From NCBI RefSeq assembly GCF_006345805.1, contig NC_043002.1, forward strand, positions 100,874,001 to 100,938,000: a stretch of DNA of 64,000 nucleotides. The letters are read 5' to 3'. The translations under genes and the position numbers were made by a program. This DNA comes from Octopus sinensis. Lineage: Eukaryota. The notes beneath the pieces were generated by a model. That model was not told the DNA's origin. It searched no databases and was given only the letters and a program-made list of their open reading frames with translations. Below are positions 4,790 to 41,818 of the stretch, in pieces (position 1 is the stretch's first letter; the number at the start of each line of letters is the position of its first letter).

Positions 4790-4905
4790 GAATTGGCTCT
4801 GAAACTAGTTTATTACATTAGTTACTTAAATGAGTTTATTCCTCATCAATTTATTGTAAACTGGTTTGGCGTTGGTTTCGGTTTTCAACTGGTCAGTCTC
4901 TCTAG
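4790..4905 (-). other. Gene A exon 5: last coding base, TAG stop (4904-4902) and 3'UTR with AATAAA
   Basis: Acceptor tttatAG at 4907-4906; AATAAA at 4814-4809 followed by a T-rich tract; paralogous exons with the same acceptor and AATAAA lie downstream of B and C; 3' end position approximate. Confidence 0.7.
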
Positions 4906-5199
4906 CTATAAAAGTGAAGATATACAAAACTTTTACTTATATACAAGAACAAATATTTCCAAATATAATTGTCAAGAGATGTTAATTATAAAGTAAAGAT
5001 TTTAATAGAATATAAATAAAACCTTTGCAACTTTACAGTCATTCAACAATACAATTAGAATGTGCTGAGTTCGATTGCCCAGGGAGGTATGAGACAGAGT
5101 AATCGCGCTGACAAAGCAAAATGTATTTATTTATTTTTCCGGTTTAATATATAGACAAATAGAAACGCATAAACAAATATGGATCCTTATGTAGAGACA

Positions 5200-6600
5200 C
5201 CCATTTTGATTAAGATGTACTGGGTAAAAATCTTCCAAAAGCACTATTCAATCTGATCGGGATGAGTTTTAACAGGTGCACCACTTTTGCGCGTCTTCTC
5301 TTGCTAATTATGTGTATTAAGATGGTAGTCTGTAACAATAAATTTTCATTGCAAATGGATCGTCGTCGTGGCAAAGTTTGAAATAAGCTGTTAGAGTAGT
5401 TTCTTTAGGAACCAATGACTGTTGAGCGGCGATTGCAGCTGTGATATAGAGACGTTGCTCATTTTTCAGACAAACAGCCGACTGTTGAATGTTTGCTCTT
5501 CAAAGGCAGGATGTTTATGATAAAGTCTGTATATATGAATATGGTAGAAACCTTCAGCATCAATAAAGCATTTTGGAGAATATTCAGATTTCCAATATAT
5601 GAACAATAACGGTCCTGTAATGGAAGTGCAAGTATTCTCCAAAATGCTTCCTTTCTGCTGATGCATCTACCTTGCTTTCATATATTCTGACTTCATCTTG
5701 AACATCCTGTCTCTGTAGAGCAAACATTGCAGTATCGGATCCTTTGTTGACATATTTGCAAACATATTTTATGGATTTCACCCGAGTTGTAAAATTCAAA
5801 ATTGATATGAACATTAGATATTTTGAGTAACAATGGGTTATATGGAACAGTCCACCTATTGCCAATTTGAAATTGTCCAACTTTTGTTTGAGAATCTAAT
5901 TCTCAAGGATTCCTTCTTTTTTAAGTTACATATCTATCGTTGAGTGTCTTTCAAACATGATAGCCTTTCAAAGAACTTCGTTGATATTTCTCTGTGGTAT
6001 CTATTGTCGTGCATACAGGGTCAATTATTGTTAAGAGCTCCACATGGGCCATGTACCATTTGAATCTTAACTATTTCATACAATGCTTTGTCTTTAGATG
6101 GATTGGGTAGATTTGCAGATATTATTCTGTCAATTTGGTCAGAATGAATTTTTTCATGAAGCCAAATAAGAATGAATGCATGAGGTTACTGCCATTCAGT
6201 TGTGTGCGTATGACAACTGATCGGTCCAAAGATATTTCCCTTTGTCATGACATCCATCACTTTCAACACTTTCTGTCTGGAAGACCTATGAGTGAGGTGG
6301 TATATATTTACATGTGTTTGACCTGGAAGCAATCCATTTTGAATCTCTTTCCACTTCGGAATACATTTCAGAGTTATGAATAGGTCTGATCTACCAACGT
6401 TCCTAATATATGTCATGGCACATATCTGGGTCTACCAATAAACATGAGTGGAAGGATGGACAATTTCTCAATGTCTTCATCAGCAATTTTGTTATCGATG
6501 TCATCACGTAAATTAATGTATGACTCAGATCTTAATTCTTTCCGGTAGGGTTTTATGAATACTAACCATTCCGCTTGTTGTCTTCTTTTTTAAAAAAGCA
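5200..6600 (-). mobile_element. Helitron Rep-domain fragment
   Basis: MTYIRNVGRSDLFITLKCIPKWKEI...LLPGQ and KSIKYVCKYVNKGSD are Helitron RepHel motifs. Confidence 0.85.
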
Positions 6601-6849
6601 ATGTGGTTGATGGCAGCCAACCTCAATCCAAATCCAATCCAGTCAAAATGAATGGGAGATCATCCACGATTTAAAAAACAATAATGATGTCATAATGAAG
6701 GGAGGGATTAAGGGAAGTACTGCTTTCATTGTGAATAATAAATACTAAAACAATTCTGTCTCTCACCTCTTAGAAGATACTACTCACCATGAAAGTATAG
6801 ACAACAACCAGCAAAATCAACGATCAAATTAAACGCACCCGTTTTCTAA

Positions 6850-7960
6850 AATCAAAAAGTAAGGAAAAGAATGTGCCCATTTAACACATGCTAAATGCAA
6901 AACCAGCAACCTCTGCGGACATCCGAAAATCCACAGGAGCAAAATGATTAACAAAGCTTGCAAAAGTGCACCTCCACCTACGTCAATGCACCACATCCCA
7001 CTGACTTCAAACTGAGACCAATTGTGGCAGACCAAAATTGTGAAGCACACAGTTTAAGCAATTTTATAGACATACTGCTAAAACTAATTGTCAAACACAT
7101 ACTAAGTATTATATGAGATGACCAGGATTTTCTAAACCACCTCCCCAAACAGGCCAGCAGGGACATTTTCATCTTCTCTTTTGATGCGATAAAACTCTAC
7201 GCTACTATTCCACACTAATACGGACAGGAAGCAATACAATACTGTCTGGGAAAATATTCCAGTATGATTCCGGGAAGAATAGAAAAGATCTTATCCTCGA
7301 GGGACCTAAGTTCATTTTGCAAAAGAACTATTTTAACTTTAACGATAAAACCTATAAATAGATATCAGGGACTCTGATGGGTATAAAAGTTGCTCCAAAT
7401 TACGCTAATATAGTTATGGCTTACCTAGAAGTTGAAAATATATGAACAGTCAAAATTAAAATACGGCCTGAATTTCTACAAGTGTTTGAAAATTGGAAGC
7501 GCTACTTGGATGACTGCCTCATTCTATGGTCTCACACATTCGACCAACTCAATGAAATCAAAGACCTAATAAACAGCTTCAATAATTATATACAATTCAC
7601 AATGGAATATAGTCAAGACAAACTGCCATTTCTAGATAACTTAATCATAAAAATGACAAAAACGTTGAAGCTGATGTCCTCTACAAACCGACTGATTCTA
7701 AGCAATATTTTCTGTTTACCTCCAACCACATGAAGATAATCATTCCTTTTGATCTAGTGAGAAGAATTTGTACAGTTGTCTCAAATTATGACGCGCGCGA
7801 GAAAAGACTCCAAGAATTAAATGGAATTCTAATGGAAAGATAGTACCCATCATCATTAATTTTTAATGGAATAGGACGGGCTAAGGGCAATCGACAACCA
7901 AAATACATACCACAGTTAAACCTACTCTTATATCTTAAAAAATATATTGGACTATCGAAC
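6850..7960 (+). mobile_element. Penelope-like retroelement RT fragment (degenerate)
   Basis: Translates to IVADQNCEAHSLSNFIDILLK, DD.DFLNHLP, FD..KLY..IPH and WKRYLDDC, i.e. Penelope RT motifs. Confidence 0.8.
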
Positions 7961-8059
7961 GGTGTCGGAGCAACTCGGTTATAGTCTAATTCCTATACAC
8001 ACGCACACCACCTACACGCATTCACAAACACATATTCGTGCGGTAACCCCCAACTTTAA

Positions 8060-8504
<445 letters not shown>

Positions 8505-9249
8505 TACCAGATACTGCCGTCGTCGACAGGGGTCAAAACAGCTGCCAAACGTGTACTATGAATTTTGAAGTTTACTCATTTCGATTGTGGTGAACATAAA
8601 TAAGAAATGGGTATTAACTTTCGTGTAGGAGAGCGAGCTCTATCTTTCTGGCAAACATATTAGAGATGACTATGGTATTCCATGCTTTTCTTTCGGAGCA
8701 GCCTTAGTCACATGTCTGAAACAAAAGAATAAAATATAAGATGCTGCACCAGTATGACCGCAGCCGACTTCGGCTTTCTGAAACGAGTAAAAGAGTAATG
8801 TATATAGACTGTACAAAATACAATATATAAATCATTCTAAATTTTGGATATAAATTTTCCCCTGAACCTTTAATACCCATTTAGATCTTACTCTGACCTC
8901 CTTTGTCTTCTATTTTAGGACCCTTTCAACTGACAATATTAAAATAGTTTATGTCACCATCACCCTCCCTATTTCTGGGGATAAACACCTATCTTACTGA
9001 CATCTTCTGAGACTTGTTCCTTAATGTGGCCATACCGAATTTATAGCCACAGTATATTAAGGGTAGGGAAGAATATCTGGCATTAATTAATTCATGATCA
9101 GCAGCAAGAACTTAACTCTTAATTTCCCGTTGTTTTAATTCTTAGTGGACGTGGAAAATTAGCTGCATTAGAGCTTTTGATGGTGATAAGGAGATAGATA
9201 AATGTAGCAATGTTACCATCTCATGATCCCCATTATGATTCTCTTCTCT

Positions 9250-9675
9250 TTTCTTTACTACCCACAAGGGGCTAAACGCAGAGAGGACAAACGAGGACAG
9301 ACAAACGAGGACAGACAAACGAGGACAGACAAACGGATTAAGTCGATTATATCGACCCCAGTGCGTAACTGGTACTTAATTTATGAACTGAAAGGCAAAG
9401 TCGACGTCGGCGGAATGAACCGTAGCGGCCGACGAAATACCTATTTCTTTACTACCCACAAGGGGCTAAACACCGAGAGAACAAACAAGGACAGACAAAC
9501 GGATTAAGTCGATTATATCGACCTCAGTGCGTAACTGGTACTTAATTTATCGACCCGGAAAGGATGAAAGGCAAAGTCGACCTCGGCGGAATTTGAACCT
9601 AGAACGTAACGGCAGACGAAATACGGCTACGCATTTCGCCCGGCGTGCTAACGTTTCTGCCATCTCGTTGCCTTG
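9250..9675 (-). mobile_element. Two tandem family-1 SINE copies
   Basis: Two successive units with GGATTAAGTCGATTATATCGACC and AAAGGCAAAGTCGAC; mirrored at 61657-62070. Confidence 0.85.
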
Positions 9676-10110
9676 AAGAAGGCGTTCGCCACTCCAAATT
9701 ATGGTTGGGATATTTTCTCCCTATGTTCAATCTGCTATGATAATAGGAAGAAGCATGTAGTTATTTTACTCTCTAGTTCTGATGAAAAATTGGCTAAGAA
9801 AAACTATAATGGAATATCCTGTATATTGAAAATATAGCAGCAGTCATGATCTACTTGAGAAATAGTAAACAGTGTGATATGGGCTTCTCTGACAAACAAA
9901 AAGACAAGCACATTATAAATTTTTTAAAAAAAAGGTATTTTAAATGTATTTTTAATGTTCAACTCGAAATCCTCAGATTTGTATCTTCACTTCAAAGTTT
10001 GAGCTAAATTTAGAACAGAAGAGGAAATGTTGCAAAAAGGTCAACGCAACAATGATATTGAGAAAATGTAATATATGAAGTAATTTTAATAGCTTCACAT
10101 AAATACTCAC

Positions 10111-10261
10111 AGAGGTGAACATTTTCCGAGAAATTTCTTTTCGGCTCTAACGTCTGTTTTTCCTTTATAGTCGCAGGTGTAAGACCAGCAAGACCCGCCG
10201 GCCCTGATGACACTCCATTTTGTACTTTTAGCAACACATCCACCATCATCCCACTTACAAT
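10111..10261 (-). CDS. Gene A exon 4, second Cys-rich domain: (Y)CKWDDGGCVAKSTKWSVIRAGGSCWSYTCDYKGKTDVRAEKKFLGKCSP(L)
   Basis: Acceptor ttttcttatcaacaacAG, donor CT/GTGAGT, 151 nt open in phase 1 to 2; same framework in B, C and D. Confidence 0.85.
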
Positions 10262-10364
10262 CTGTTGTTGATAAGAAAATATATTAATTATTCTATTAAA
10301 ACTATTTTTATGACATAATTATGCCTACACTAGTCTAAGACTTTGGCAAAATATCAGCAATTTC

Positions 10365-10535
10365 AGGGGGACTATGAAATCGATTACAATAACTCTAATG
10401 TTTAATTGGGACTTATTTTATCGACCTGGAAGGGATCGAATGCAAAATCTAAGAGAAATTTAAATTCTTGTCAGAAAGGTAGAAAAAATTCCGATAAGTG
10501 AATATGCCCGACGTGCTAACAATTTTGCCCTCTCA
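10365..10535 (-). mobile_element. Ancient family-1 SINE in intron 3, shared by paralogs A, B and C
   Basis: Same decayed SINE at the same distance from exon 4 at about 47285-47470 and 58085-58250. Confidence 0.7.
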
Positions 10536-11876
10536 TCGTTTCAATTAGTGATATCCTGGTATATATGTTTATTTAACGTAAATTATTATTCACTTTTTTA
10601 TATTGAGTTCATATTCCTAAATCGGAATAAAGTAAAATAATCGTTTTCATACCTTGTATGCAATCAAAGTACGTGTGATCACTTTAATTTGGTACAAGAG
10701 AATTAGCATTTTACTACATCATTTATATGGTATATTAAATTCTGATAATTCTAAACATTTATTCTTTAAATATTTAAACGTACTATTCACTTCTTAATAT
10801 ATTTTTATAATTTATAATTTTTATATACACTTACTTGTAGGTTTTGTTAATAATTTTTAACTTTCTATATTTTATCCCAATCCTGTCCTTCTGCAGTCCC
10901 CTTTATAGGGCTGTTCTATCTTTATTCCTTCTTAACTATCATTTATCACTCACTTTGTCCCATCAACTCCTCTATTAATAAAATATTAGCAATTTATTGC
11001 ATAACTTATATAATATTTTACTTCTACTAATTATAATCTTCTTTTCTTAATTCTTAATCTTAACACTATATATTTTACGCCAGTTTCTTTCTATTCTGTA
11101 ATTAATTCGGAATTTATTTTTCCAATATTTTCCTTATTCCTCTATTTCCTGTATTTTATTTATCTTCAATTCACCTAAGCTATATTCGTTCAAAACGATC
11201 AGAGTTTGTAACTTTCTTGGCCATCTTTGTCTTCGATTCTAAATTCTACTTTACTGCTTTAACTCTTCAGGGCACACGCACCCCATTAACATTCTCCCTT
11301 TTTTGATTTCATTTTCCCTTTTATGTCTCACCATATCACATTCTAAGTCCACCAGGATACGTCCGCTGCTAACAAGTAGTTTACGGCATTCTCCTACTAT
11401 CAACATCATCCTCTCCCAACACGTATCACAAATGTCATTATTCTTATAATTTTTAGTTCTTCTAAATATCCTCTCACTATACTTATTTGTTGTCTTTGTA
11501 ATCAGTTTTGTCCGTCGTTTCTTGTGTCTGCCTAACGTTATCTCTAGAGGTAAATTAAAATAATTATATACCCCTGAAATGGTATTTGGTACCGGTGAGG
11601 ATGTTGTACAGACTGACCGTTCTGAGAATATTTTTTAAAAAATTTTCTCTGATATAAGCAAAACAAAAAGTAAAAGAAGAAAATGATTGGAAGACATGCA
11701 ATGTAAGAGTGCATTATTGATGAAAGTCTGATGAAGTGCCACACTAATGTCTAAAAGCGCTATTACTACGTAAATCTCCATTTCGATTATCGCTTAAGCT
11801 GGAGTCGCAAAGAGAGTTGGTACAGAAACAATTGTAGCGAAACAGTGATCACTTGTTGAAAGATTGCTTCAACTTA

Positions 11877-12165
<289 letters not shown>

Positions 12166-12169
12166 CATG

Positions 12170-12725
12170 GTGGCTGTCCTCTCGTTATTGAGTATGGCCA
12201 TTGCACGAAGCTTAATCAATGTTGTTATCGTGCAATGCCTGCGCAAGAAGATATTTTTTTTAAGTGAGGAAAGACTGTGCACTGAGTCAATCCCACTCAC
12301 TAAGCAACAGCAGCCATAATCCCAAAAGAAGAACAAGTCAACATAATCGGTACACACTGAGCCGCAGGTTTTATGTCGGAGTTATCCCAGTTACCTGAGT
12401 TGCCTTCTCCTAGAAGGATGCCCTAACAAAGGCTAGGAGTCCTTCACTCCCGATGGTTTAACTGCGCGATCGGGTATTCAATCCGATTATTTATATGTCC
12501 CCGCGCATGATACAGCTTTAAGACATTTATTGGATGGCCGTTGACTCTCAAGAGTTCCTCCGCCCTTTGACGGGTTTTGTTTTTCATCCCGCAGGGTGAC
12601 CAATAAACACCCTCCTCACCAAGCGAGCTTAGTGGGGTTGCCGGTTTAGTCGCCGACGACCCGACCATGCAAAAGGGAGTACTGGGTTACATGTTACCAG
12701 TAGCACTCGAAAGTGACCTGACATA
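12170..12725 (-). mobile_element. RTE-BovB-like LINE 5'UTR without ORF
   Basis: Reverse complement of 30866-31530, which leads into an RTE endonuclease ORF. Confidence 0.75.
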
Positions 12726-12749
12726 CATACATACATACATACACATTTT

Positions 12750-13920
12750 TTGTAGTTTCAGCTCAAAGCTGCGGGGCACCACCGTTTTGCTACACTGTTA
12801 TTATTGAGAGCCTTCTCTAATATGTGACATGTAGTGAATAAGAGTGATTGATGTCACTACCTTCATTTGAACCCCTTGCCGCGAGGTAGGTTCACCTAGG
12901 ACACTCAAAAGGAAGAGGTCCAGTTTTGATCTGAAGTACCTACATCCACTTTGTGTAGGTCCCTCACACTCTTTGGGAGAATATTAAAAAGCTGTTGGCC
13001 CCTGAAACCCAGGCTGTTGCAGTAACTGGTCCTGAAGCGTGATGGCGTTGCTGCCATTTTGGCACTCTGCACTTTCGACTCGTTCTCTGCATTGGTGTAG
13101 CTTTGAATGACAAAATTTGGCACAATTCCTTCAAGGATCTTCCAGATGTATATTATTGTATACCTCACCCACCTTCGCTCCAGGGAGTGGAGTCTTAGCT
13201 GTTTCAGGCTTTCTCAATAGCTGAACTCTCGCAACGAGACGATCTACTTTGTGAAGCTTCGCTGGATTGCGTCAAGGCCTGCTGTAATTTTACACTGTTG
13301 GGTGACCGTAGTTGGGAGCAATAGTGCAGGCAGCTGAGGACGAATGTCCTCCAGAGAATAATCACGGTTTCCTTCTCTCTGTTTCTCAACGTTCTCAGGT
13401 TCCATCCAGCCAGTCGTCTGCAATTTGTCACCATGCTGGGAATGTGGACTTGGAAAGAAGTATCATCATTCATGTCGTACCCATGTCCCTCGCTGATTTG
13501 GGCCCTGGGATTGTAATTCCCTGTGTACCAGTCTACCCTGTCAGTATTATATTCGGTTTTGGACGTTGGTAGTGCAGGGCTTGGAATTTTTCAGCACTAA
13601 ACTGCATATTATTGTCTTCAGCCCATCTGTAAATTGCCTCCAACTTCTGCTGCAGGTGTGCAACATCGCTGGTATTCTGTATTTTCTGTGAGACTTTTCT
13701 CTGATATAAGCGTATCGTCTGCGTAGGTAACAAGGATGGCTATCCGGGCAGTTGAACGCATATCGGAGAGGGCCACTATGAAAAGTAGTGGTCGCAAGAC
13801 AGTGCCCTCTAGAACACCGCTGAATATTTGTGTTTTCTTTGAGGTGGTTCCGTTGGCCTCCACTGCCTGACTTCTTTCAGAAAGTCATGTAACCTAACCA
13901 CTCTTCAAGTTTTCCAGCTA
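12750..13920 (-). mobile_element. CR1-clade LINE, 3' part of RT (5'-truncated, degenerate)
   Basis: [52 protein letters not shown]. Confidence 0.85.
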
Positions 13921-14074
13921 TGTATATATATATATATATAATTTTTAGTGAGACACAACTGCATCAATGTACCTGATGAGACCCAGACTGCAAGGACGAT
14001 GCAACAGAATCTTTTGAATGCAGTCACACACATAAAGTTTAATATCAAAATCCTTCTTGTCGTTAGTTAATTAA

Positions 14075-14076
14075 TA

Positions 14077-14166
<90 letters not shown>

Positions 14167-14300
14167 ATACATATATATACATATATATATACATATATAT
14201 ATATATGTACATATATATATACATATATATATATGTATATATATATATGTATGTATATTTATGTATATATATTTATATATTATGTATATATATACATATA
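14075..14300. repeat. (TA)n/(TG)n compound microsatellite
   Basis: Seen directly. Confidence 0.95.
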
Positions 14301-14853
14301 TATAAAAGCAATTAAGATTCAAGTCAATTCCATGTCTCTTTTCTCCTTTTTCCTTTCTTTTCTTTTCTTTGCTCCACAAAAAATTCCTTCAACCTTTAGA
14401 AGTCATAACATAGCAGTTGTGCGTGGAGAACAGTAATGTGACAAATACCTTATCATATAGCATGAAATGATTGTGGATTAACCATGGATAAATTCATCGT
14501 CTGTGAGTATGAAATTCCTCCTCATATCTCTGGAAATTTACATCTACACTACGGATTAATTCACCTTCTCTGTGAAGCTAATAAGGTTTTAAGAACCTGT
14601 GATAAGACTGTACATCATCATTAAAGAACTTTGGAAATCTGTTTGCAACCTAAATCTGCCTTTAATGAAATTATCTCCAATACTTCATGAGTATAGCCTC
14701 ACCCACTAAGATGTTTGGAGAACTCATATGTATTTTAGCTGATGAGTACGGGACACTTTTATCTGCTGCAATTTTTGCAACTTTTAATAAAGCCTGTCTT
14801 TGTATGAAACAATTGTACTAAAAACTAATCCATTCTTGTTGCTTCTTTCTCGT

Positions 14854-14913
<60 letters not shown>

Positions 14914-14974
14914 AGGAGAGATACTTCTGAGTTTAAATCACGCATTTAATGTTTTAATTAATTAAGTTGCATTC

Positions 14975-15378: not shown

Positions 15379-15519
15379 AGAACTCTTTTACCTTTATTTT
15401 CAGTTTACCATCAAACTTGTCGCATATTTGCTTGGCACATATATCGGATTTCGTTTCCACCCATTCTTCTTTAAAATCGCGGCAAAAAAAAATGTCGTCG
15501 ATACATCCTCCCGGACAAC
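15379..15519 (-). CDS. Gene A exon 3, first Cys-rich domain: (S)CPGGCIDDIFFCRDFKEEWVETKSDICAKQICDKFDGKLKIKVKEF
   Basis: Acceptor tttttctttAG, donor T/GTAAGT, 141 nt phase 1-1; lies in ORF 15329-15535; paralog at 60723-60857 with alignable flanking intron. Confidence 0.85.
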
Positions 15520-15960
15520 CTAAAGAAAAATACATGCATTATAATAGTTTCCACTAACGAATATTAGATATTTTACAAGACAGATTTATTATAAGTTAGC
15601 ATAGGTAAAGATGGTTTCAATAATATCCAACTTAGATCATAACTTTCATTCTAATTCATATATCGTTTACCTCCTTTCTCAGTTCTGTCTCCATAAAACG
15701 AATACGTATGAAGAATATATTGAAACCAATTCAACGAACAGGTACGTACTTCTACAACGGTTTCTTCTAATCAAAGGCGTGGTTTTGGCAAACCAAAAGG
15801 TTTCGGTGTGAAGTGATAAATCGCATAAAGTATAAGAAACACCGGATTTCAGGTTGGTATAGGCGTTTTTGCTGGTAATAAATCATGAACGCCAAAACAA
15901 AATAAAGCTAATAGTGATAATGATAATGCTATTATTATTATTATTATTTATTATTATTAT

Positions 15961-16422
15961 TGAGTGAGAGAGCAGTGCATGCCATCAAAGTGACACTGGG
16001 GTAAAATATACGAAGCCCAGTATACCCATCATGACCACCCGTCTGATAAGGGTACACCAGGCACATGCATCACAACCATATGTGCGCGACATGGTGATCT
16101 CACATCAAGATAAACAGCACATGACCTTGCAGGTGGGGCCCACTTAAAATTTTCTTCAGGTCGAGTAGCCCATCCCGCTCAAACGGTCCTTGAATAAGGG
16201 TTGTTTAAGGATGTTGAATGAAACACCCATGTTTCCAGAGGTGAATTATTCAAACCCCAAAGAATCCCTCTCAACACATGGCTATGATGCTCCCCCACTA
16301 CTTCTGCTCGTGATCAGAGATGCACATATCGTCAGCGATTAAGGGACATGCTCAACTGGTTATGGTCAAACAACTGACAAGCAAATCTGTGGTATTGAGC
16401 AGAATATTTGCTGTAGCCCATC

Positions 16423-16455
<33 letters not shown>

Positions 16456-16920
16456 GAGTGAGCGAGCAGAGCATGCCATCAAAGTGACACTGGGGTAAAA
16501 TATACGAAGCCCAGTATACCCATCATGACTACCCGTCTGATAAGGGTACACCAGGCACATGCATCACAACCATATGTGCGCGACATGGTGATCTCATATC
16601 AAGATAAACAGCACATGACCTTGCAGGTGGAGCCCACTTAGAATTTTCTTCAGGTCGAGTAGCCCATCCCGCTCAAAAGGTCCCTGAATAAGGGTTGTTT
16701 AAGGACGTTGAACGAAACACCCATGTTTCCAGAGGTGAATTATTCAAACCCCAAAGAATCCTTCTCAACACATGGCTATGATGCTCCCCCACTACTTCTG
16801 CTCGTGATCAGAGATGCACATATCGTCAGCCACTAAGGGACATGCTCAACTGGTTACGGTCAAACAACTGACAAGCAAATCTGTGGTATTGAGCAGAATA
16901 TTTGCTGTAGCCCATCTTTT
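15961..16920 (-). mobile_element. Two tandem copies of a ~460-bp non-coding element embedded in (ATT)n
   Basis: 15961-16415 and 16456-16920 are near-identical; third copy inverted at 21648-22110; (AAT)n tail suggests a Dong/R4-associated retroelement. Confidence 0.7.
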
Positions 16921-16945
16921 ATACCAAGACAAAACAATGTACATG

Positions 16946-17005
<60 letters not shown>

Positions 17006-17169: not shown

Positions 17170-18060
<891 letters not shown>

Positions 18061-20214: not shown

Positions 20215-20435
20215 GCATTGGCAGAAACGGTAGCAGGCCGGGCGAAAAGCGTAGCCGTATTTCATCTGTCGTTACGTTGTGAGTTCAAATTCCGCCGAGT
20301 TCGACTTTACCTTTCATCCTTTCGGGGTCGATAAATAAAGTACCAGTTACACACTGGGGTCGATGTAATCGACTTAATCACTTTGTCTGTCCTTGTTTGT
20401 CTCCTCTATGTTTAGCCCCTTGTGGGCAATAAAGA
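20215..20435 (+). mobile_element. Family-1 SINE inserted in the Helitron
   Basis: TGGCAGAAACG box A-like and GAGTTCAAATTCC box B-like head with the family tail. Confidence 0.85.
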
Positions 20436-20649
20436 AATATATATATAATATATATAATCACCCAGGCAGCCGTAGTAGTGAGAACGGTATGATAACGGAA
20501 TGTTACTTTCAATAAAGTTTTCCTGCATCGCCATCAAATTCTAATCTGTAATCCGCTCATTGTCCTATTCAGCGAAACAAAAATGCTTACCAAGGCATCA
20601 TTTTCCACTTGTACTTGTACTTATCTTGATTTTCGGAAAGCTAAAGTGT

Positions 20650-21429: not shown

Positions 21430-21645
<216 letters not shown>

Positions 21646-21647
21646 AA

Positions 21648-22110
21648 AAAGATGGGCTACAGCAAATATTCTGCTCAATACCACAGATTTGCTTGTCAGT
21701 TGTTTGACCTTAACCAGTTGACCATGTCCCTTAATCGCTGACGATATATGCATCTCTGATCACGAGCAGAAGTAGTGGGGGAGCATCATAGCCATGTGTT
21801 GAGAGGGATTCTTCGGGGTTTGAATAATTCACCTCTGGAAAAAAGTGTTTCGTTCAACATCCTTAAATGACCCTTCTCAGGGACCTTTTGAGCGGGATGG
21901 GTTTCTCGACCAGAAGAAAATTCTAAGTGGGCCCCACTTGCAAGGTCATGTGCTGTTTATCTTGATATGAGATCACCATGTCGCGCACATATGGTTGTGA
22001 TGCATGTGCCTGGTGTACCCTTATCATACGGGTAGTCATGATGGGTATACTGGGCTTCGTATATTTTACCCCAGTGTCACTTTGATGGCATGCACTGCTC
22101 TCTCACTCAA
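21648..22110 (+). mobile_element. Third copy of the ~460-bp (AAT)n-associated element
   Basis: Reverse complement of the 15961-16415 unit. Confidence 0.75.
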
Positions 22111-22119
22111 TAATAATAA

Positions 22120-24900
22120 TAATAATCACTTCGGTATGGAGCAGGTATTATAAAATGATAAAAGAATGAAATGAAGAAAATGGATACAAAGACGAAGAAA
22201 ATGGTAAGAGCACACGGAACTTTCCACCCTAAGCGTGACACCGGTAGGCTGTACTTGTCCAGAAGAAATGGATTATGGTGAAACAATGTGGTGCAGAAAG
22301 GGAATACAATGTGGATAAGAACTATCAATATAGAATTATAAGGAGGAAAGAAACAAATATTGTCATAAGCACGAGGGATGTGAAAGAGCAACTGGAAAGC
22401 CCTCGAACCGGATGGGATTCATGATTTCTGGCTGAAGAGATGCTACGCGGTGCAGGGAAGACTAGCAGAAAGGTGCATTCCCTCCGTGGATGGTGACATT
22501 TAAAAGGAAAGATAGATGAAAGGGGATTATTATGGGTTGTGGGAATCTACCGTCCCGTAGCATGCCTAAACATAATCTGGAAAGATACTCACTGGAATAT
22601 GTACGACCAAGACATACTTTTCTGACACAGGAAGAAATACTACTAAGGGAAGAGTTCTCGTGGTTACAAGGATCACCTGGTCATCGATAAAACAATTTTG
22701 AGGCGTTGTAAAAATCATTATACAAACATGTCTATGGCTTATATTGACTTTAAGAAGGCATATCATATGATGCGTCATTCTTTGATCGTTGAAAGCCTGC
22801 AGATGTTTGTTGTTGCTGACAATATCACAAATTTTGTGATGCTTATCATGAAAGAGTACAAAACCAAACTGTACTCAAGTAATGTATTCCTTGGAGCAGT
22901 TAATATTAAAGGGGGAATCTTCCAATGTGATTCGTTTTCTCCGTTACTATTTGTAATTCCACTAATACCTATAACAATGGCCCTTAGGAAAGTTAAGATG
23001 GGTTACAGATGTGGGAAGAAAGACCCACCATTGAACCGCCTCGAGATACGATACATAGTCAAGGACAAAGAATTTGGGACAGTAAAGGATGCGATGAAAT
23101 AGCATATCATAGCAGTAGCATACAAGCTCTCCAGATACCAGAAAAAATAGATCTATACGAACACAGTAGATTATTTGGGAAAGACCAGAGGAGATTCTAT
23201 AAGCAAATAAATATTGGAAAACGAAGTATTGAAGATGAGATAGCTAATGCAGACGAAGATAGAATGTTCAGAAATAATATTTTCGATGAGCCAGTCAATT
23301 ATAATGGAAATGCAGTATAGTCAAAGAAACTGAGGGAAGAATTAGTATATGAGAAGCAGCCAGATCAAAGAGTAACTAGTTCATTAATGAGTAAAGTGTT
23401 AGGAAAAATGACGAATTGGAAGTGCCAAGTTTCAGATTTAGTTCAAGCATATTGGTTAAAAAATTTAGTAGTTGACATAGGAGGCTGAGGGAACAACTTC
23501 AATATTGCCTTAATAGAGGAATAATACCAGATTGGATGACTAGATGGAGAACAATATTCATCATGAAAGACAAGAGCAAGGGTAATACAGCTGGCAACTG
23601 TAGACCAATCACTTGCTTACCATTAGTGCGGAAGCCGCATAGGAACTCTTTCAGGAAGCATTTACCAGCACATTCACAGCCAGAATTTACTGCCAGCAGA
23701 ACGGAAAGATGTCTAGAAGAACGCATGATCTATTATACAATGATAAAGCAGTTCTAAATGAAGTAAAAGCTAAAAGGAAAACTCTAACAATAGCATGGAT
23801 AGATTACAAAAGGTGTATAAAATGATTCCATACTCATAGATTAGTAATTTTTTGAGTATATTCAGTACTTCAGACAACAATGGAATAAATTAATAAATTA
23901 GCTGTAGTGTGAAGAAATGGAAAGTTTATCTCCACTCAGGTGACACAATGTTATGGAAAGTTAGTATCAAACGAGTAATTTTCTAGGCGGGGGGATTGTT
24001 CCCTTTAATATTCGTTTTATGTTTGATCCACCCCAGTTTACTATTAAGAAAGGCATAGGCAGTGTATCAGTTCAGATATAGTAAGGCAAACAAATAATGT
24101 TTTACATGGATGGTCTGAAGCACTTTGGTGAGAATGAAGAAGAGATCCATTCCTTAATACAGACTGTGAGACTCTCCAGCAAAGATATAAAGTTGGAACG
24201 TGGCATAGATGTGAGCACAATATTAGTCAGGAGAAGGGGACAGTGTCAAGAGCGAAGACATCAATGACTATTGGATTTCTGACAGGGTACTAACTGCAGC
24301 AATGAAACCGAAAATTATGAAGGAGTACATCAGGTGTGTGAGGATGCTTATGAAGACAAAGCTAAATGGTCCGAATCTAGATAAAACCTGAATTAGCAAA
24401 GTCAGAGAGAAAACTGGGAAGGAATTCAGTATGAATGGAGGTCTCTAACCAAAGGCAGGAGTAGTAAGATTATACTTACAGAGAAAGAAAACCGGAAGAA
24501 TGTGACTATCAGTAAAATACTACGTGGAGTTAGCTACAGTAGATATAGACTCCTATGTAGGTAATAGCGAAGAAAGTTTATTAAAAGCCGCTAGAGTCAC
24601 AACAAGACATAGGGAAAAACAAAAAGTGAAACAAACTTAAAAACCAGAAAACAGAACATATATTATCTAAATGGCAGGAGGAGGCATTGCATGGTAGATT
24701 CCCAAACATAGTTGAAGAAAATAATTGTACTAAGACATGGTTATGGTTGCAGATAGGAAAGCTGAAAAGGGAAACAGAAAGTTTGTTAGTAACTGCATAA
24801 AATCAAGCATTGGATAAAAACCAAGATAGACAAAAATCAACTAGATTACTTACGTAAAAAAATAATAAAATGCTGCCAGACTTATATTTCGCACATAGCT
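22120..24900 (+). mobile_element. Dong/R4-type LINE, two nested or rearranged degenerate RT fragments
   Basis: MSMAYIDFKKAY, GIFQCDSFSPLLF, GKDQRRFYKQIN and NCRPITCLPL motifs; RT region occurs twice. Confidence 0.8.
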
Positions 24901-24949
24901 CTAAGTGGGACACAGGAAAGTCCACACAGAAAAGACAGTAAGATAAGGA

Positions 24950-25055
24950 AAAGTCGCGAACATTTCACATGCGGTTAGTTTTTATGAACTCAGCGAAATT
25001 GGAAGGAGACGGAGAAAGTGGTTTCTGGGACAAGAAATGCTGTAGATGGGCGGTA

Positions 25056-25097
<42 letters not shown>

Positions 25098-25820
25098 TGG
25101 TAGCGTGTGTATGTATGATAGTATAATAGCGTATGTGCGTGTGCTAATAAATGTGGTGGGGTATTTGTCTATGTGGATGTGAGTATATGTGGAAGTGTAC
25201 GTACTTACGCGTATATGTGTGTTCGTTCTTCCTCTTTGGACATTCCTCTTTCCAGCGGAGAGATATACTCGAAACGTGAGCAACAATGGCCAATTATAAA
25301 AGTGAAGATGTTTCACTAGACAAGAACAGATGCAAAAACATCCAACATACAGAAATAAAAAGGAATAAATAAAATTAAATTTAAATAAATATCTTGATGA
25401 ATACTGCAACCAAATCGAAAATGTTTCCCACCACACTTTGCATAAACAAAAGATCATTTCAAACTTCAGCGCCACCAAATGGAAAGTACGAAGTGAACTG
25501 TAAACAATGAAGAGATAACAATCAAAGAAGCGGATAAAGTGAGTGTGATAGTGACCACAGAAATATTTAACTACAAGAATCTGGTAGTATCCATGTTAAA
25601 TAATGACTAACACCACAAAAGAAAAACAAAGATTACTCCCCCACCTATAAAAACAAATAATGATAAAGCATTTTTGCCAAATCGAAACCCACGGAAAAAT
25701 CCAACAAAAAAGAAATCGATTATTTAACAAGCTTTAAATGTAAACCCAGCCTATTCTATGGTCTACCGGAAATTCACAGAAGCCAAACTATAAACGACGC
25801 CTTCAAAAAATCATCAACGG

Positions 25821-25852
<32 letters not shown>

Positions 25853-27420
25853 GACTCCAGGAGACCTAACATGACGACCCATTATTGCTGGACCATCCTG
25901 TGAAACACATCGATTAAGTTGCCTCATGTACATCTTCGTGATACCATTTCTAAAATACAGCAAAAACTATATTAGGTATGATTTAGATATGTTAAATCAC
26001 CTACCAGAAAAGGTTAAGGACGAAACACACATTTTTTGATGTGATGTGATAAACCTGTACACTAATATACACCCATAAATTTGGAATAGGAGCGATCCGG
26101 TTCTGGCTGTTCAAATATCCAGAAGAAATACCACAATGGATCAACAAAGATTTCATGATCGAATCAATAAAATTCATCCTTCAAAACAATCATTGTCACA
26201 ACTGTTTATCGCCAAAAATCCGGAATTGCCAGGGGAACCAAGACGGCCCCGACTATTGCAAATCTAGCAATAGACTATTTAGAAATAATATTATATCAGG
26301 AGCCATTTTCAAAATTTAGAAACACTCTCTTGCTATACGTAAAAATACATTGGAAAAGAGTTTTTATGGATTGCTTCATCGTCTGAATGAAAACATAATC
26401 TCCTGAAGTTCAAAAGACTCCTCAATAGCATTAACACCAGCATAAAATTTACAACGGGACACAACCAAGAGGAAATCCCATTCCTTGACATATTGGTTGA
26501 AACAAAAAGCAAAATGCAGAAACGCACATATTCTACAGAACTACATACACTAAACAATACCTATTATTTAGATCATGCCAACCGAGGCATATCCAATAAA
26601 ATATCCACTTCAGCTTTGCAAGAAGGATTTACAACATATTGTCCGAATAAATACCAGAGAACTAAGACTGTAATCATACTCAAAGACAAAGCGTACTCTA
26701 AGATTAAAAACGTACTCAAAGACAAACACTGCCCAATTCAACTCATACATGAAGAGATTAAACGTGCAAAATCGATTGACATAAAACATTAAGAAAAGTT
26801 GAAGAAAATAACACACCTACTCTGAAAACAACCCCAGAAACAAAGAAGCGTTTTACATCATTGTCCAAAATCTCCCAATACCCCATAAGAACCCCAGACC
26901 GCAGGAAATTGTACGTATCCATAAAAATAGTAAAAGCAGTAAACAGCTAAGGACATTAAAGAAACCTCTCGCAAATGCTAAATTATACTTCAAAATAACA
27001 GACGCAAGAGGAAAAATGAGATCATCCTAACAGCGAAATATGTCCCAATCTTTTGGAAGGATCAGAGTTCCATTTTAGACAAGGTCAAAAATTCAAATTT
27101 AAATGCAACTTCACTTGCGCCTCTGAAAATCTCATTTACGTAATCTGATGTTCCGGCAGTCATAAAAACTATATAGGGCCGACACGAATGTCTGTCCGAA
27201 GGAGATGTGCTGTGCACAGACAACAGATATCTTCCCCACAATACTGCCAGAAATATGTCAGTGAAAACATTTACAGATATACAGAACAATTTCAACCACA
27301 TTTCCTCATATTTTCATTATATTAATTTGATATTTGGACCTCAACACAAGTACAACTAAATAAAGAGGCATCATTTATCGAAATATATAAGCCAGACTTA
27401 AATATAAATCTTGTGAGTGT
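24950..27420 (+). mobile_element. Penelope-like element (RT plus GIY-YIG), degenerate
   Basis: FYGLPEIHRS, PIIAGPSCETHRLS and NLIYVI.CSGSHKNYIG.T motifs. Confidence 0.8.
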
Positions 27421-27444
27421 TTATTGAGCGAAAACACCTAAACA

Positions 27445-27632
27445 TCCACGAGGCTCCGGCAGGGTGGTGGTGGCGATCCCTGCTGTACTCTTTCGCCACA
27501 ACTTTCTCTCATTCTTTCTTCTGTCGGCCTGCTCGCTTAGCCAGCGGGGTGGCGTCATTTGAAGGCTAAAACAATGCGAAGTGCATTGTGACCAGCGATG
27601 TGTAGCAACATCTGATAGCCTGGTCGGTCACG

Positions 27633-27637
<5 letters not shown>
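27445..27637 (+). repeat. Dispersed repeat (partial second copy at 29450-29570)
   Basis: GGCCTGCTCGC..GGGTGGCGTCATTTGAAGGCTAAAAC..CATCTGATAGCCTGGTCGG present at both sites. Confidence 0.7.
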
Positions 27638-27675
<38 letters not shown>

Positions 27676-28206
27676 TAAGATTCCGTTAAATTGGGTACTG
27701 CGATTAAGCCACTTCGTTCTGTTTGTATAATCCGCTCAAAACAATTTAATATCAACATGTATTCCTGCTGCTTTCCCTCTCTAAATTATTGTAAACTTGG
27801 CAAGGTATGCATTACTTTCTAAATTCATACTACCAGAGAAACTGTACATGTTTTGTGTTCCATTATTCTTGCGAATATTTTAAAGCAGTGGCTGTAACCT
27901 TTTTGTTTGAAGTCTAAGCGGTCATCTGATAAGAACGGCTTCTTTGAAATGTTTTAATGTTTTTATTAATCAAATAAAACGGTTGCTTGAAACGGCCGTA
28001 ATGGGTTGATAACTGTACATCTTCGTTACTCATTTACATATGTGCGTGTGTGAGTGTGTGTGGTTATTCATATATATATATATTCATCTGTGTAAACATA
28101 TTGTGCTTAAATCCTTAAATCCTTAAAAATGTTTCAGCCCGAAGGCTGCGGCCATGCTGGAGCACCACCGCTGAAAAACATTCAAGAATAAATTCCGAGC
28201 CGTAGA

Positions 28207-28278
28207 GGAGGGCAGCCGGGATTGAACCGGAGACCCCTCGATATGCAGTCGAATGCTCTCCCACTGAGCTATACCCCC
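28207..28278 (-). tRNA. tRNA-Cys (GCA), variant or pseudogene
   Basis: GGGGGTATAGCTCAGTGGGAGAGCATTCGACTGCATATCGAGGGGTCTCCGGTTCAATCCCGGCTGCCCTCC folds as a cloverleaf with a GCA anticodon; atypical T37, T49:C65 mismatch and C73. Confidence 0.75.
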
Positions 28279-28321
28279 GACTGCTTAGGAAATATATTTT
28301 CATATATGAAAGGAAACTTAC

Positions 28322-28391
28322 TTGGGTCTCCTGACATAACATCTTTCAATGCAACCAAAATCAGCAAACAAGAAGGAAGTAGTCGTGTCAT
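28322..28391 (-). CDS. Gene A exon 2 coding part, signal peptide MTRLLPSCLLILVALKDVMSGDP
   Basis: Acceptor tttgtatttccAG (exon starts 28397), ATG at 28391, donor A/GTAAGT in phase 1 joining exon 3 in frame; hydrophobic core with small-residue cleavage region. Confidence 0.8.
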
Positions 28392-28717
28392 ATTGATCTG
28401 GAAATACAAATGTAATTTAACGTAACAGAACTGGTAACTGCTTTCTATTTCAAGGAAGAAGAGGAACAGCGCATTCACTGATATACGCGTCCTGTATGAC
28501 AAAATGTCATCATCCCAATTGCAGAGCATAAAATCCACAGATTTGTCTCCCCTTACTCAAAGGAACAGGATAACTCCAACCCCATTTCCTGTCTTGACAC
28601 TCTTTTACCAAACACTTTAAACTAAGCACCACGTTTAATCACATGGATCTTAATCTTCCAAAGAAATTTTCCAAGGACTATTATTGAACTCAAAAAGCAT
28701 AAAGACTCTACAATGTA

Positions 28718-29171
28718 CGAGGGGCGTTCAATAAATAATGCCCCTGACCCACTTCCCATAGCAGTAGAGCAACGAAACTTGGCACAGTTATTAGTCTTTT
28801 TCTACATAGGAACCATCCAGAGTTACGCATTTCTCCCATCGTTTGATGCGGCTCTGGAGACCGTTTTTGTAGAAGAACCCAGCTTGGTCCTCCAACATCA
28901 ACGTGACTTCAGAAATCAAGGCTTCATCATCTGGGAAACGCTTTCCTTTCAAAAACAACTTCATGATTGGGAAGAGGTGAAAATCAGACATTCAACAGGC
29001 TCCATTTCACACTTGACTCGGTTCAAACACCTGTAAATCAGAAACCACAATTAATTCAGAGCTGTAATTTGGCACTTACTCTATAGAGATATAAATAATT
29101 GCACATGCAAATTTCAGCTAGATCAAACAACTGCAAGTGGGTCAGAGGCATTACTTATTGAACGTCCCTCG
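28718..29171 (-). mobile_element. Internally deleted mariner (454 bp) with ~37-bp TIRs and TA target duplication
   Basis: TA-CGAGGGGCGTTCAATAAATAATGCCCCTGACCCACTT versus inverted copy ending CCCTCG-TA; ORF SDFHLFP..K.FLKGKRF..RWEKCVTLDGSYVEK. Confidence 0.9.
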
Positions 29172-29419
29172 TATCGGTATACTTATTTATTCATTTTTGT
29201 ATATATATTATTATTATTTTTTTGAAAAAAACATTGTAAATTTCTTTTTTCCCCTTCCCCAATAAAAAAAAATTATTTTCCCCTTTCAAATCTTGAAAAT
29301 TTGCTTTGCGATAAAAACTGGTTTGATCTAATATTTTTTAAAAATTTTCCATACACACACCCATTTTTATTAAAATTTACTTTCAAGTTAGCATTCCGCC
29401 TTATTATAATTTTTCCTCT

Positions 29420-29453
<34 letters not shown>

Positions 29454-29824
29454 CTGCTCGCTCAACCAGCTGGGTGGCGTCATTTGAAGGCTAAAACTAT
29501 GCGAAGTGCATTGTGACCAACAATGTGTAGTAACATCTGATAGCCTGGTCGGTTACGGTGATCACGGTGATATATATATATATATATATTATGGAGATGC
29601 ACTTGCATAGTAAGTAACTCCTGATCTGAGATCCTGTGCTGAAACAAAAACAATTGCAGTATGGAGGGTGTTTAAAAGCCATTTCAAAAAAAAAAACAGA
29701 CAAAAACCGTTAGATTTACTTCAACATTTAAATTTAGTTTGCTAAAATATCTTCGACGCTTTGAGACCGCGAGCCGATCAATAACAAAATTACGTGCTGC
29801 ATCTGTTTATATATATATATATAT

Positions 29825-30556
29825 TTTTTTTTTCTCTAGTTTCAGCTCAGAGCTGTGGCCATGCTGATGCACCGCCGTTTTGCTACACAGTTATTACTAA
29901 GAGCCTCCTCTAATATGTGACATTTGGTGAAGCATGAAGTTTGATATAGCTACCCTCATTTGCACCTCTTGCCGTGAGGTAGGTTCATCCGGGACTCTTG
30001 ACAGGAAGAGGTCCAGCTTTGATTTAAAAAGCCCTACATCTACTTTGTGCAAGTTCCTCAGACTCTTTGAAGAATATTGAAAAGCTGTGGGTTCTTGAAA
30101 CCCAGGTTGTTGCAGTAACTGGTTCTGAAGCGTGATGGCATTGCTGGGACCTTTGGCACTATGCAGTGTCGTCCCGTTCTGGCATTGGTGTAGCTTTCAA
30201 TGCCAAAATTTGGCACAATTCCTTCCAGGATCTTCCAGATGTATATTACTGCATACCTCTCCCGTCTTCTCTTCGGGGAGTAGAGTCTTAACTGTTTCAA
30301 CCTTTCCCAGTAGCTGAGCTGTTGCAAAGAGACGGTATTCTTTGTGAATCTTCTCTGGATTGCTCCAAGGTCTGCTGTTAATTTCACACTGGTGGATGGG
30401 CATAGCTGTGAGCAGTAATCCAGGCGACTGAGGATGAATGTCCGCCAGAGGACCATCATGGTTTTCATATCTCTGGTTCTGAATGTTCTTAGGATCCGCC
30501 CATAGCCAGTCGCCATCCTGGTAATGTACGCTTGGAAAGAGGCATCATCACTCATG

Positions 30557-30563
<7 letters not shown>
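29825..30563 (-). mobile_element. CR1-clade LINE 3' fragment
   Basis: ORF 30058-30555: [16 protein letters not shown]...[20 protein letters not shown]; same family as 12.75-13.9 kb. Confidence 0.85.
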
Positions 30564-30835
<272 letters not shown>

Positions 30836-30865
30836 CGACATGAGTGATGATGCCTCTTTCCATTT

Positions 30866-32695
30866 ATGTCAGGTCACTTTCGAGTGCTATTGGTAACAAC
30901 CTGTTGCATGGTCGGGCCGTCGGCGACTAAACCGGCAACCCCACCAAGCTTGCTTGGTGAAGAGGGTGCTTATTGGACACCCTGCGGGATGGAAAACAAA
31001 GCCCGTCAAAGGGCGGAGGAACTCTTGAGAGTCAATGGCCATCCAATAAATACGTAATCATATGTTTACTGTATATCTGCCTTTTTCTGACTAATTTTTA
31101 TATATTGTATATTTTTATAGCTTGCTCATTATATAAATTCTATATATACTTCACATCATATATTTTATGTATATTTTGTATTTCAATGTTCTTTTTCTTC
31201 TCCTTATATCAATTTTATCCAGATTAAGGCTGTATCATGCGCGGGGACAGAAATAATCGGATTGAATACCCGATCGCGCGGTTAAACCATTGGGAGTGAA
31301 GGACTCCTAGCCTTTGTTAGGGTATCCTTCTAGAAGAAGGTAACTCAGGTAACTGGGATAACTCCGACATAAAACCTGCAACTCAGTGGTTACCGATGAC
31401 GTTGACTTGTTCTTCTTTCCGGATTATGGCTGCTGTTGCTTGGTGAGTGGGATTGACTCAGTGCACAGCCTTTCTTCACTTTAAAAAAATCTTCTTGCAC
31501 AGGCATTGCACGATAACGACGTTGATTGATTGATTAAATTGATTAACAAATTCATGATTGTTGATAGTGCTGTGAGTCTCAACTGAATGGCTGGCTGTAG
31601 CCTTAAAAAGCAAATGATGTACCAAACAGTATATAAATAAATGGCAGTTAGGACTCTGGAACCATATCAGATGAAGGAGTCTGGCCCGGCAGGGGCTCCA
31701 GAGCATCACAGTTTGAACCCGGCCGTCATCATGCTACTGTGATAGAACCAAATGAAATATTGAATATTGGCTGCTGGAATGTACGGATACTGCTTGACCG
31801 CAAGTCCTCTGAATGTCCCGAACGAAGGACTGCCCTTGTTGCGAAGGAGCTTCAACGCTATGATCTTGACGGCGTTGCTTTATCTGAAACGAGATTAGCC
31901 GGAGATGGTCATCTTACAGAATCTTGTGAAAAATATACATTCTTTTGGAAAGGGAGGAATGAAGAGTTTAGAGGAGAGGCTGGAGTGGCATTTGCTGTTA
32001 AGACTACTCTTGTGGACAAGTTGGAAGAATTCCCAGTCGGAATTAACGAGCGTCCATGAGAATTCCTTTGGTTAAAGGAAATTATGTGACCTTGGTGAGT
32101 GTGTATGCTCCAACTATGTGCTATACTGATGACGATAAAAATTTCTTTCTACCATGCTTTGAAGGGCATTATAAGAAATATCCCTCGGGCAGACAAAGTC
32201 ATCGTACTGGGTGACTTTAATGGTAGAGTGGGTAGGGATTTTAACACATGGACTGTAATTGGAAAGTACGGGGTGGGAAAGTGTAATAGTAATGGCATGC
32301 TTTTGCTGCGGAAGTGTGAGGAGCTGCGTCTAGGTGTTACCAATACCATGCTTCAGCAAAAGAATAAATTCAAGACCACATGGCATATTCCGGATTACAG
32401 GTGCGTGACAGGCAGGATGTGCAGTGTGTTCGTGTTCTTCGTGGAGCTGAGTGTTGGACTGACTACCGCCTAGTACGTACAAAAGTGAAATTAGTCACAA
32501 AACATAAAATCCGAGCTGCAGGGATTACCCTGCCTAAAAGACTGAGTGTTGATCGTCTCAGGTGTAATAGTGTGAAGAGAACTTTACGAGAGGAAATGAA
32601 TGCTGCAGATATTGGGGAGGATTGGCTGACCCTTAAAAAGTCCGTTTATGATATAGGCAAGAAAGTTCTGGGATTGATACAAAGAAAGCATAGAT
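30866..32695 (+). mobile_element. RTE-BovB-like LINE 5' part (5'UTR plus AP endonuclease), 3'-truncated
   Basis: LNIGCWNVRILLD...PERRTALVAKELQRYDLDGVALSETRL, IVLGDFNGRVG, GVGKCNSNG. Confidence 0.9.
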
Positions 32696-33015
32696 AGATA
32701 GATTATACGTAGATGGATGGATACTTACATGTATAGATATAAACGAACACAGACATATATTCACACACAGAAACAGAAAGTACAATTAGTCTAGATTTCG
32801 ACTTTATATCTTTTTTCTTTACCAAAAGAATCAAATGAACACATTGACAGATATCTTTATATTAGACACGTTTCCGATTTTATGTTCTATAAGAAAACAT
32901 TGACGAACAAATTCAGTTTTTAAAATCACATCTGAGTTATATTGCAAAACAAACATTTAGATATTTCATAGAAATTCCATTAAAAAAAATAAGATACTTT
33001 TAGAAGTTCACTTAC

Positions 33016-33056
33016 GTATACGAAAAGGACAATGCTGAGAAGAAATATAAAAGAAT
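33016..33056 (-). other. Putative non-coding exon 1 of gene A
   Basis: 41 nt from the initiator A to a GTAAGT donor at 33015-33010; contains no ATG. Confidence 0.6.
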
Positions 33057-33085
33057 GAAGAATGCGAAAGCGATGAGTATTTATA
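33053..33085 (-). promoter_or_regulatory. TATA box (TATAAATA, 33085-33078) and initiator (TCATTC, 33058-33053) of gene A
   Basis: First T of the TATA box lies 29 nt upstream of the initiator A; upstream 33160-33430 is paralogous to 47745-48020, 5' of gene B. Confidence 0.65.

Positions 33086-41748: not shown

Positions 41749-41818
<70 letters not shown>

Follow-up and report, generated by a model that had tools for sequence, protein, structure and literature searches.

Pairs of fibronectin type I (FnI) modules bind extended peptides by β-strand addition, and FnI modules are regarded as restricted to chordates; the N-terminal subdomain of the VWC module is itself FnI-like. The beta-microseminoprotein (MSMB) family has molluscan members, cephalopod ones included, one of which serves squid as a contact pheromone (PMC3268785, PMC4500399). 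Here we analyse gene A, a candidate gene for a small secreted protein on the minus strand of a 64,000-nt stretch of the Octopus sinensis genome (NC_043002.1, positions 100,874,001 to 100,938,000; hereafter the window), where an earlier note had placed a "hidden" gene spread over 28 kb and encoding a 121-residue, two-domain, ten-cysteine protein. We give a probability of about 0.7 to the reading that gene A is a real gene and a member of a secreted, FnI-like ten-cysteine family.

Gene A and its ortholog in Octopus bimaculoides

Gene A consists of five minus-strand exons with GT-AG borders and compatible phases, each of them lying where the earlier note had put it:

33016-33056, minus strand: exon 1, a non-coding 5' leader with an uncertain 5' end and a conserved GTAAGT donor
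28322-28397, minus strand: exon 2, with the start codon (28391-28389) and the putative signal peptide MTRLLPSCLLILVALKDVMSGDP, then the first base of a Ser codon (profile E = 1.3e-12)
15379-15519, minus strand: exon 3, encoding the CxGGC motif and the N-terminal module, five cysteines (family profile E = 1.7e-17)
10111-10261, minus strand: exon 4, encoding the final cysteine of module 1 and the C-terminal module, five cysteines (family profile E = 1.2e-21)
4790-4905, minus strand: exon 5, with one coding base, the TAG stop, the 3' untranslated region and three AATAAA signals, homologous to the coding last exon of the paralogs

The donors read GTAAGT in exons 1-3 and GTGAGT in exon 4, and every acceptor consists of a polypyrimidine tract followed by AG. 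Splicing the five segments reproduces the predicted 121-residue product letter for letter; translation starts at 28391, the first ATG to occur in the spliced RNA, where position −3 is an A, and the frame crosses phase 1 junctions after exons 2 and 3 and a phase 2 junction after exon 4, with TAG directly next. Read-through of the exon 4 donor gives CTG TGA and leaves the C-terminus unchanged from that produced by splicing to exon 5, so that the gene A protein is independent of the exon 4-5 splice. Against per-exon family profiles the coding exons scored E = 1e-12 to 1e-21, the best background value among 3168 six-frame segments of the window being above 0.4, and by this sequence measure the exon set is far above chance level. 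The precursor contains 11 cysteines, one within the signal peptide and the ten mature ones that had been counted before. Residues 1-15 are hydrophobic and small residues occupy positions −3 and −1 of the presumed signal-peptide cleavage site, which probably lies near Ser20/Gly21, and the mature protein would be secreted and held by five disulfides.

When 5.8 billion protein clusters were searched by word index, a single relative came up, "uncharacterized protein LOC128248175" (P0001) of Octopus bimaculoides, a 129-residue protein with 68% amino acid identity to gene A (E = 1e-46) and all ten cysteines aligned. The minus strand of the window and the locus of this relative (L001, chromosome CM046606.1) are collinear in a blastn comparison, from exon 2 to past the 3' end, at 80-90% identity including the introns, and the borders, phases and canonical splice sites of the three coding exons match between the two species. 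Exon 2 has 89.7% nucleotide identity to exon 2 of LOC128248175, and exon 4 has 77.6% amino acid identity to the ortholog over 49 aligned residues. The coding span measures 18.3 kb in the window versus 9.6 kb in O. bimaculoides, and intron 2 measures 12.8 kb versus 3.7 kb. By sequence and collinearity, gene A is the syntenic ortholog of LOC128248175. The collection of 5.8 billion clusters held neither the gene A sequence nor any match above 68% identity; gene A is thus unlisted there, consistent with its description as hidden, and its absence means that catalogues of repeat-rich cephalopod genomes still miss small long-intron genes.

An Octopus family with a predicted FnI-like fold

To place gene A among other proteins, a family profile made from the ortholog and the per-exon window translations was scored exhaustively against 1.84 billion representative proteins, and a second, richer family profile was run through the word-index search of the 5.8e9-cluster collection, together with a cluster look-up. 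Nine related models were found, all from Octopus, all "uncharacterized" and all without a Pfam domain:

Octopus bimaculoides: LOC128248175, LOC128248056, LOC128248057, LOC128248060, LOC106872088 and A0A0L8IDP9
Octopus sinensis: LOC115212787, LOC118763691 and LOC118763783

The family profile matched models P0002-P0006 at E = 1e-10 to 1e-20, and no member outside Octopus was found in either collection, the remaining matches below E = 0.001 being just a 260-residue low-complexity repeat protein and a 990-residue repeat protein, both without the family cysteine framework. The family is already in NCBI/UniProt as these nine uncharacterized models, yet it is unnamed and undescribed, and a literature search with its locus names, accessions and signal-peptide strings gave no match. 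The earlier note had not recognised the protein as a named family; no well-characterised family matched it, though nine relatives were already in the databases.

In an alignment of 10 sequences, with paralogs 25-40% identical, the ten mature cysteines and two tryptophan columns are invariant and follow the pattern C-x-G-C-x5-C-x6-W-x7-C-x4-C-x15/18-C-x6-C-x6-W-x7/8-C-W-x3-C-x17-C. From sequence, this pattern may be divided into a CxGC motif and, after it, two modules of similar make-up, both of the form C-x6-W-x7/8-C-x4-C-x15/17-C. Mean pairwise identity is 58% in the signal region versus 34% at mature non-cysteine positions, and the mature proteins are about 95-130 residues long once the signal peptide is removed. 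Members compared at three loci (L001, L002 and L003) have in common an exon plan of signal, N-module and C-module exons with phase 1 borders and a shared last exon. Gene A and the other Octopus models share the MTRLFPFCLL... type of signal peptide, the ten cysteine and two tryptophan columns, this exon plan with phase 1 introns, and long repeat-rich introns, O. sinensis LOC115212787 spanning 29 kb. Gene A differs from the other models in having CPGGC where they have CxGC, and it differs, together with its ortholog, from some paralogs in lacking a basic C-terminal tail and stopping at the first codon of the family last exon. Judged by these sequences, gene A is a member of a tandemly duplicated family found only in Octopus.

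Pfam searches gave nothing above threshold for gene A or for 11 family sequences. AlphaFold2, run on a 12-row family alignment with the ortholog P0001 in place of gene A, predicted an all-β structure with a predicted local distance difference test (pLDDT) score of 80.9, rising to 86-96 in the core; a 6-row alignment gave a pLDDT of 43. When the model was compared with the PDB by Foldseek, ranks 1-10 and 12-14 were all FnI module pairs (2-3FnI, 4-5FnI and 8-9FnI), with probabilities of 0.91-1.00, E = 0.012-0.2 and target-normalised template modelling (TM) scores of 0.44-0.54 over about 90 columns, and a viral structure library contained no fold match comparable to these pairs. The predicted model has the FnI fold, a hairpin plus a three-stranded sheet, as a tandem pair, and the PDB titles of the FnI matches describe structures in complex with collagen and Staphylococcus aureus peptides. 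The predicted structure is best described as two FnI-like finger modules in a free-standing pair, to which a CxGC is added. The sequence, profile and fold searches proposed in the earlier note thus lead to no characterised sequence family and, by fold, to FnI pairs, in agreement with the loose likeness to fibronectin type I that it named, and its broader view of a real gene for a secreted two-module protein gains support from the syntenic ortholog, the conserved hydrophobic N-terminus and the all-β model.

A likeness to VWC, also named in the earlier note, was not supported. The VWC profile (PF00093) matched P0010 alone, at 14.5 bits and E = 0.044 versus a gathering score of 27.6, with no match in the other 10 of 11 sequences; the VWC motifs CxxCxC and CCxxC are absent from all ten aligned sequences, and VWC structures are absent among the top 50 Foldseek matches.

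Proposed role and competing readings

The gene A protein would most likely be secreted, locked by five disulfides, and would act extracellularly as a small binding module, gripping an extended peptide or a matrix or surface ligand by adding a β strand to its sheets; this binding mechanism, taken by analogy with FnI pairs, is put forward tentatively. The mature surface is changing fast, with the cysteines and the signal peptide staying fixed, and such a surface, combined with copy-number turnover, suggests a role at a changing interface, that is, in defence, reproduction, chemical signalling or saliva. The picture drawn from the sequences is of a fixed disulfide frame and signal peptide, a surface changing freely or adaptively, and a cluster gaining and losing copies. 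We speculate further, and consider it doubtful, that the octopus family is a true FnI-like finger pair that arose or persisted outside chordates, free-standing, secreted and fast-evolving, for species-specific recognition, whether by binding pathogens, as a ligand of gametes or the egg coat, or as a contact pheromone; if true, it would represent a new lineage-restricted class of extracellular recognition molecule. The same features of a conserved signal peptide with a variable mature part, tandem duplication and fast evolution are typical of toxin and antimicrobial families, raising the alternative that gene A encodes a salivary (venom) or mucus toxin-like peptide for which the FnI-like fold is merely a scaffold. 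We regard this alternative as unlikely, given that Pfam and PDB sequence searches revealed no similarity to described toxin families and that no literature on these loci was found.

The ends of gene A bear on whether it is a functional gene, and two further features are needed here:

33080-33085, minus strand: TATAAA box, read in the sequence, preceding the proposed transcript start by about 25-30 nt
8670-8715, minus strand: alternative last coding exon behind an intact acceptor, TTTTGTTTCAG, which would give a tail ending ...CSPLHVTKAAPKEKHGIP (added tail HVTKAAPKEKHGIP)

Both the TATA box and the AATAAA signals announced earlier are present, the former as TATAAA at 33085-33080 and the latter three times inside exon 5 (4855-4850, 4840-4835 and 4814-4809). 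The stretch around the TATA box, TTATAAATACTCATCGCTTTCGCAT, is identical in the O. bimaculoides copy (L001 26058-26344). Over 288 bp, the core made up of promoter and exon 1 shows 88% identity to this copy, in which both TATA box and donor are intact, whereas the flank farther upstream of exon 1 is 72-75% identical to its O. bimaculoides counterpart, the level of a paralogous copy; the higher conservation of the core speaks for a function. The O. bimaculoides module of promoter and exon 1 is situated 3 kb before the signal exon of the next paralog. We also observed that window 33467-32737 aligns with L001 25835-26559, the gene A module thus matching the module of the next paralog and not that of the ortholog. 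It follows that O. bimaculoides has lost such a module by deletion or that the lineage of the window has undergone a rearrangement. On conservation alone, exon 1 is plausible.

At the other end, the exon 5 region is 87% identical to O. bimaculoides, paralogous copies exist in both species, and AATGTAATAAACT is invariant across four exon 5 copies from the two species, showing that the polyadenylation signal is conserved. In two annotated paralogs the homolog of exon 5 serves as coding last exon: in P0003 it gives the tail DLPIANRSENQTSLL, and in P0004 of O. sinensis it lies at L003 31894-31995, 10.6 kb past the C-module exon. Exon 5 is therefore the canonical terminal exon of the family, opened by an in-frame TAG in gene A and in the O. 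bimaculoides ortholog. Polybasic or dibasic sites (KKRR, RQKR and KK) stand just past the last cysteine in P0002, P0003, P0004 and P0010. Sequence comparison suggests that the C-terminal tail of the paralogs is cleaved at basic sites and that gene A and its ortholog lost this tail by the early stop.

Several observations weigh against the reading of gene A as a real gene for an FnI-like protein. On the side of the fold, the structure model rests on 12 sequences, PDB sequence searches with a single sequence and two profiles gave none or chance matches, and the fn1 profile (PF00039) had no match at E <= 10 for gene A or the family sequences; on the predicted model, the FnI likeness is one of fold (Foldseek E = 0.01-0.2), not of fn1 family membership. 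The internal repeat of two modules is marginal by sequence (hhalign E = 0.037), and the family members are known here from genes and gene models alone. On the side of the gene, 8715-8670 is the window counterpart of NCBI's last exon for LOC128248175 (L001 19588-19620) and possibly competes with exon 5 as the 3' exon; the tail it would encode is unlike the O. bimaculoides tail QVIEDTQNKTA and so is not conserved, and the cysteine core of gene A is unaffected by the choice of 3' exon. Within the 10 kb that precede LOC128248175, no counterpart of the promoter and exon 1 module was detected. Comparison of gene A with its ortholog revealed 7 synonymous and 44 non-synonymous differences, a ratio of non-synonymous to synonymous rates (dN/dS) of 1.6 that is not significantly above 1 (binomial p = 0.18), and the exons, with 51 differences in 351 aligned sites (about 85.5% nucleotide identity), have diverged at roughly the pace of the introns, so that relaxed constraint is possible if rates alone are considered.

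A dN/dS indistinguishable from 1 and an exon identity within the 80-90% range of the collinear introns would fit a locus that is a decaying or silent copy, its frame open by chance in a young, duplicate-rich cluster and giving no functional protein in this species. The absent upstream module in O. bimaculoides fits this alternative as well, as do a dead exon (47191-47044) and a stranded inverted exon copy (61075-61225) in the same cluster. However, the frame of gene A is intact, its three coding exons have canonical splice sites in O. bimaculoides as well, and the exon 1 donor is conserved too, though upstream of another paralog in O. bimaculoides. All ten cysteines are kept, also in paralogs only 25-40% identical, and the probability that all ten cysteine codons would remain unchanged at the observed non-synonymous rate is about 0.006. 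The promoter core, more conserved than its paralogous flank, and the invariant polyadenylation signal point the same way, and we judge a silent copy improbable.

A divergent cephalopod beta-microseminoprotein of the kind of Loligo beta-MSP, the contact pheromone of squid egg capsules, would accord with the third likeness named in the earlier note and shares with gene A its make-up as a secreted protein of two domains, ten cysteines and about 10 kDa, a layout of non-coding exon 1, signal exon, N-domain exon and C-domain exon, and a rapid evolution that spares the cysteines and the signal peptide, with lineage-specific tandem duplication (PMC3268785), but this identity is scarcely credible and was rejected, given that PSP94 (PF05825) matched neither gene A nor any of 11 family sequences at E <= 10 (human MSMB control, 148.9 bits), that hhalign of the family profile against human MSMB, its sequence confirmed by a 149-bit PSP94 match, gave a probability of 0.2%, that the MSMB spacing CxxCxC and adjacent CC are lacking in the family alignment, and that MSMB structures are absent among the top 50 Foldseek matches.

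The surrounding cluster and related modules

The family-profile scan of the window detected a single signal exon, two exons of the exon-3 type and four of the exon-4 type. No family member other than gene A is complete there, and exon 2 of gene A is the only exon of the signal-peptide type. The other family exons, and one repeat within gene A, are as follows:

60723-60857, minus strand: exon-3-type exon of gene B, with five cysteines in register (E = 4e-19)
57828-57975, minus strand: exon-4-type exon of gene B (E = 6e-21)
60950-62931, plus strand: inverted 2-kb duplicate of gene A exon 4 and the beginning of intron 4, matching 8375-10387 at 93.35% identity over 2030 bp
47044-47191, minus strand: dead exon-4-type copy found in the family-profile scan, in which the tryptophan codon of the CW motif has changed from TGG to TGA
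28104-28284, minus strand: 181-bp short interspersed nuclear element (SINE) derived from tRNA-Cys, in intron 2, 37 nt past the exon 2 donor (Rfam tRNA, 51.6 bits)

Gene B shares about 34% identity with gene A and has good splice sites and the full set of ten cysteines; its signal-peptide exon was not found inside the window, and a word-index search of the protein collection gave no match to it. The exon copy within the inverted duplicate (61075-61225) is intact and differs from exon 4 at 5 of 151 nucleotides, all of them non-synonymous. The profile scan found no plus-strand exon 2 or 3 in the window to accompany it, the edge of the duplicate lies about 90 bp from gene B exon 3, and the duplication is younger than the split from O. 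bimaculoides. Downstream of the dead copy, at 44805-44761, a copy of the family last exon still reads DLPIGNRSQNQTSLL, 87% like the tail of LOC128248056.

The introns of gene A contain interspersed repeats, as the description of transposon-filled introns had it, including the species-specific tRNA-Cys-derived SINE, within which ARAGORN calls a tRNA-Cys(GCA) at 28207-28278. The 181 bp are wholly missing at the orthologous O. bimaculoides site, and "taag" stands on both sides of the insert. Interspersed repeats from the introns recur in both O. bimaculoides and O. sinensis at unrelated loci, and the O. sinensis loci L002 and L003 have only repeats in common with the window. Among the intron transposons, Pfam recognised a weak reverse-transcriptase match alone (E = 0.0097). 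One repeat family comprises a 494-bp unit in tandem and an inverted copy (15930-16919 and 21620-22126), and a SINE-like unit of about 183 bp recurs at 9314-9674, 20219-20453, 58720-59107 and 61655-62070; both show 85-96% identity to copies at unrelated O. bimaculoides and O. sinensis loci. Three palindromic stretches of 330-420 bp, at 41810-42148 (97.6% complementary), 30533-30862 and 56144-56539, may be foldback elements or elements resembling miniature inverted-repeat transposable elements.

Nine scattered uncharacterized entries are tied here into one Octopus-restricted family with a well-marked cysteine framework and a fold predicted with confidence, and the new content is the definition of this family and its FnI-like pair fold. 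Such families are often at work in defence, mating or chemical signalling. If the reading as an FnI-like pair is true, it would supply a concrete binding mechanism for a lineage-specific, fast-evolving secreted family and extend finger-type modules to molluscs; a search for papers on FnI outside chordates returned irrelevant matches only.

Compared with known modules, the octopus family shares with VWC and single-VWC proteins the presence of ten cysteines in a secreted module, and P0010 has, within its weak match, the VWC-like motif Y-x2-G-E-x-W. By predicted fold, the closer likeness is to the FnI pairs of human fibronectin, which, like the octopus model, consist of two consecutive small β modules, each a hairpin plus a three-stranded sheet, with four cysteines per module and a conserved tryptophan after the first cysteine. 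By contrast, FnI has C-x-C where the octopus family has C-x4-C, and the family adds an N-terminal CxGC pair and occurs as a free-standing protein of 100 residues rather than as part of a mosaic.

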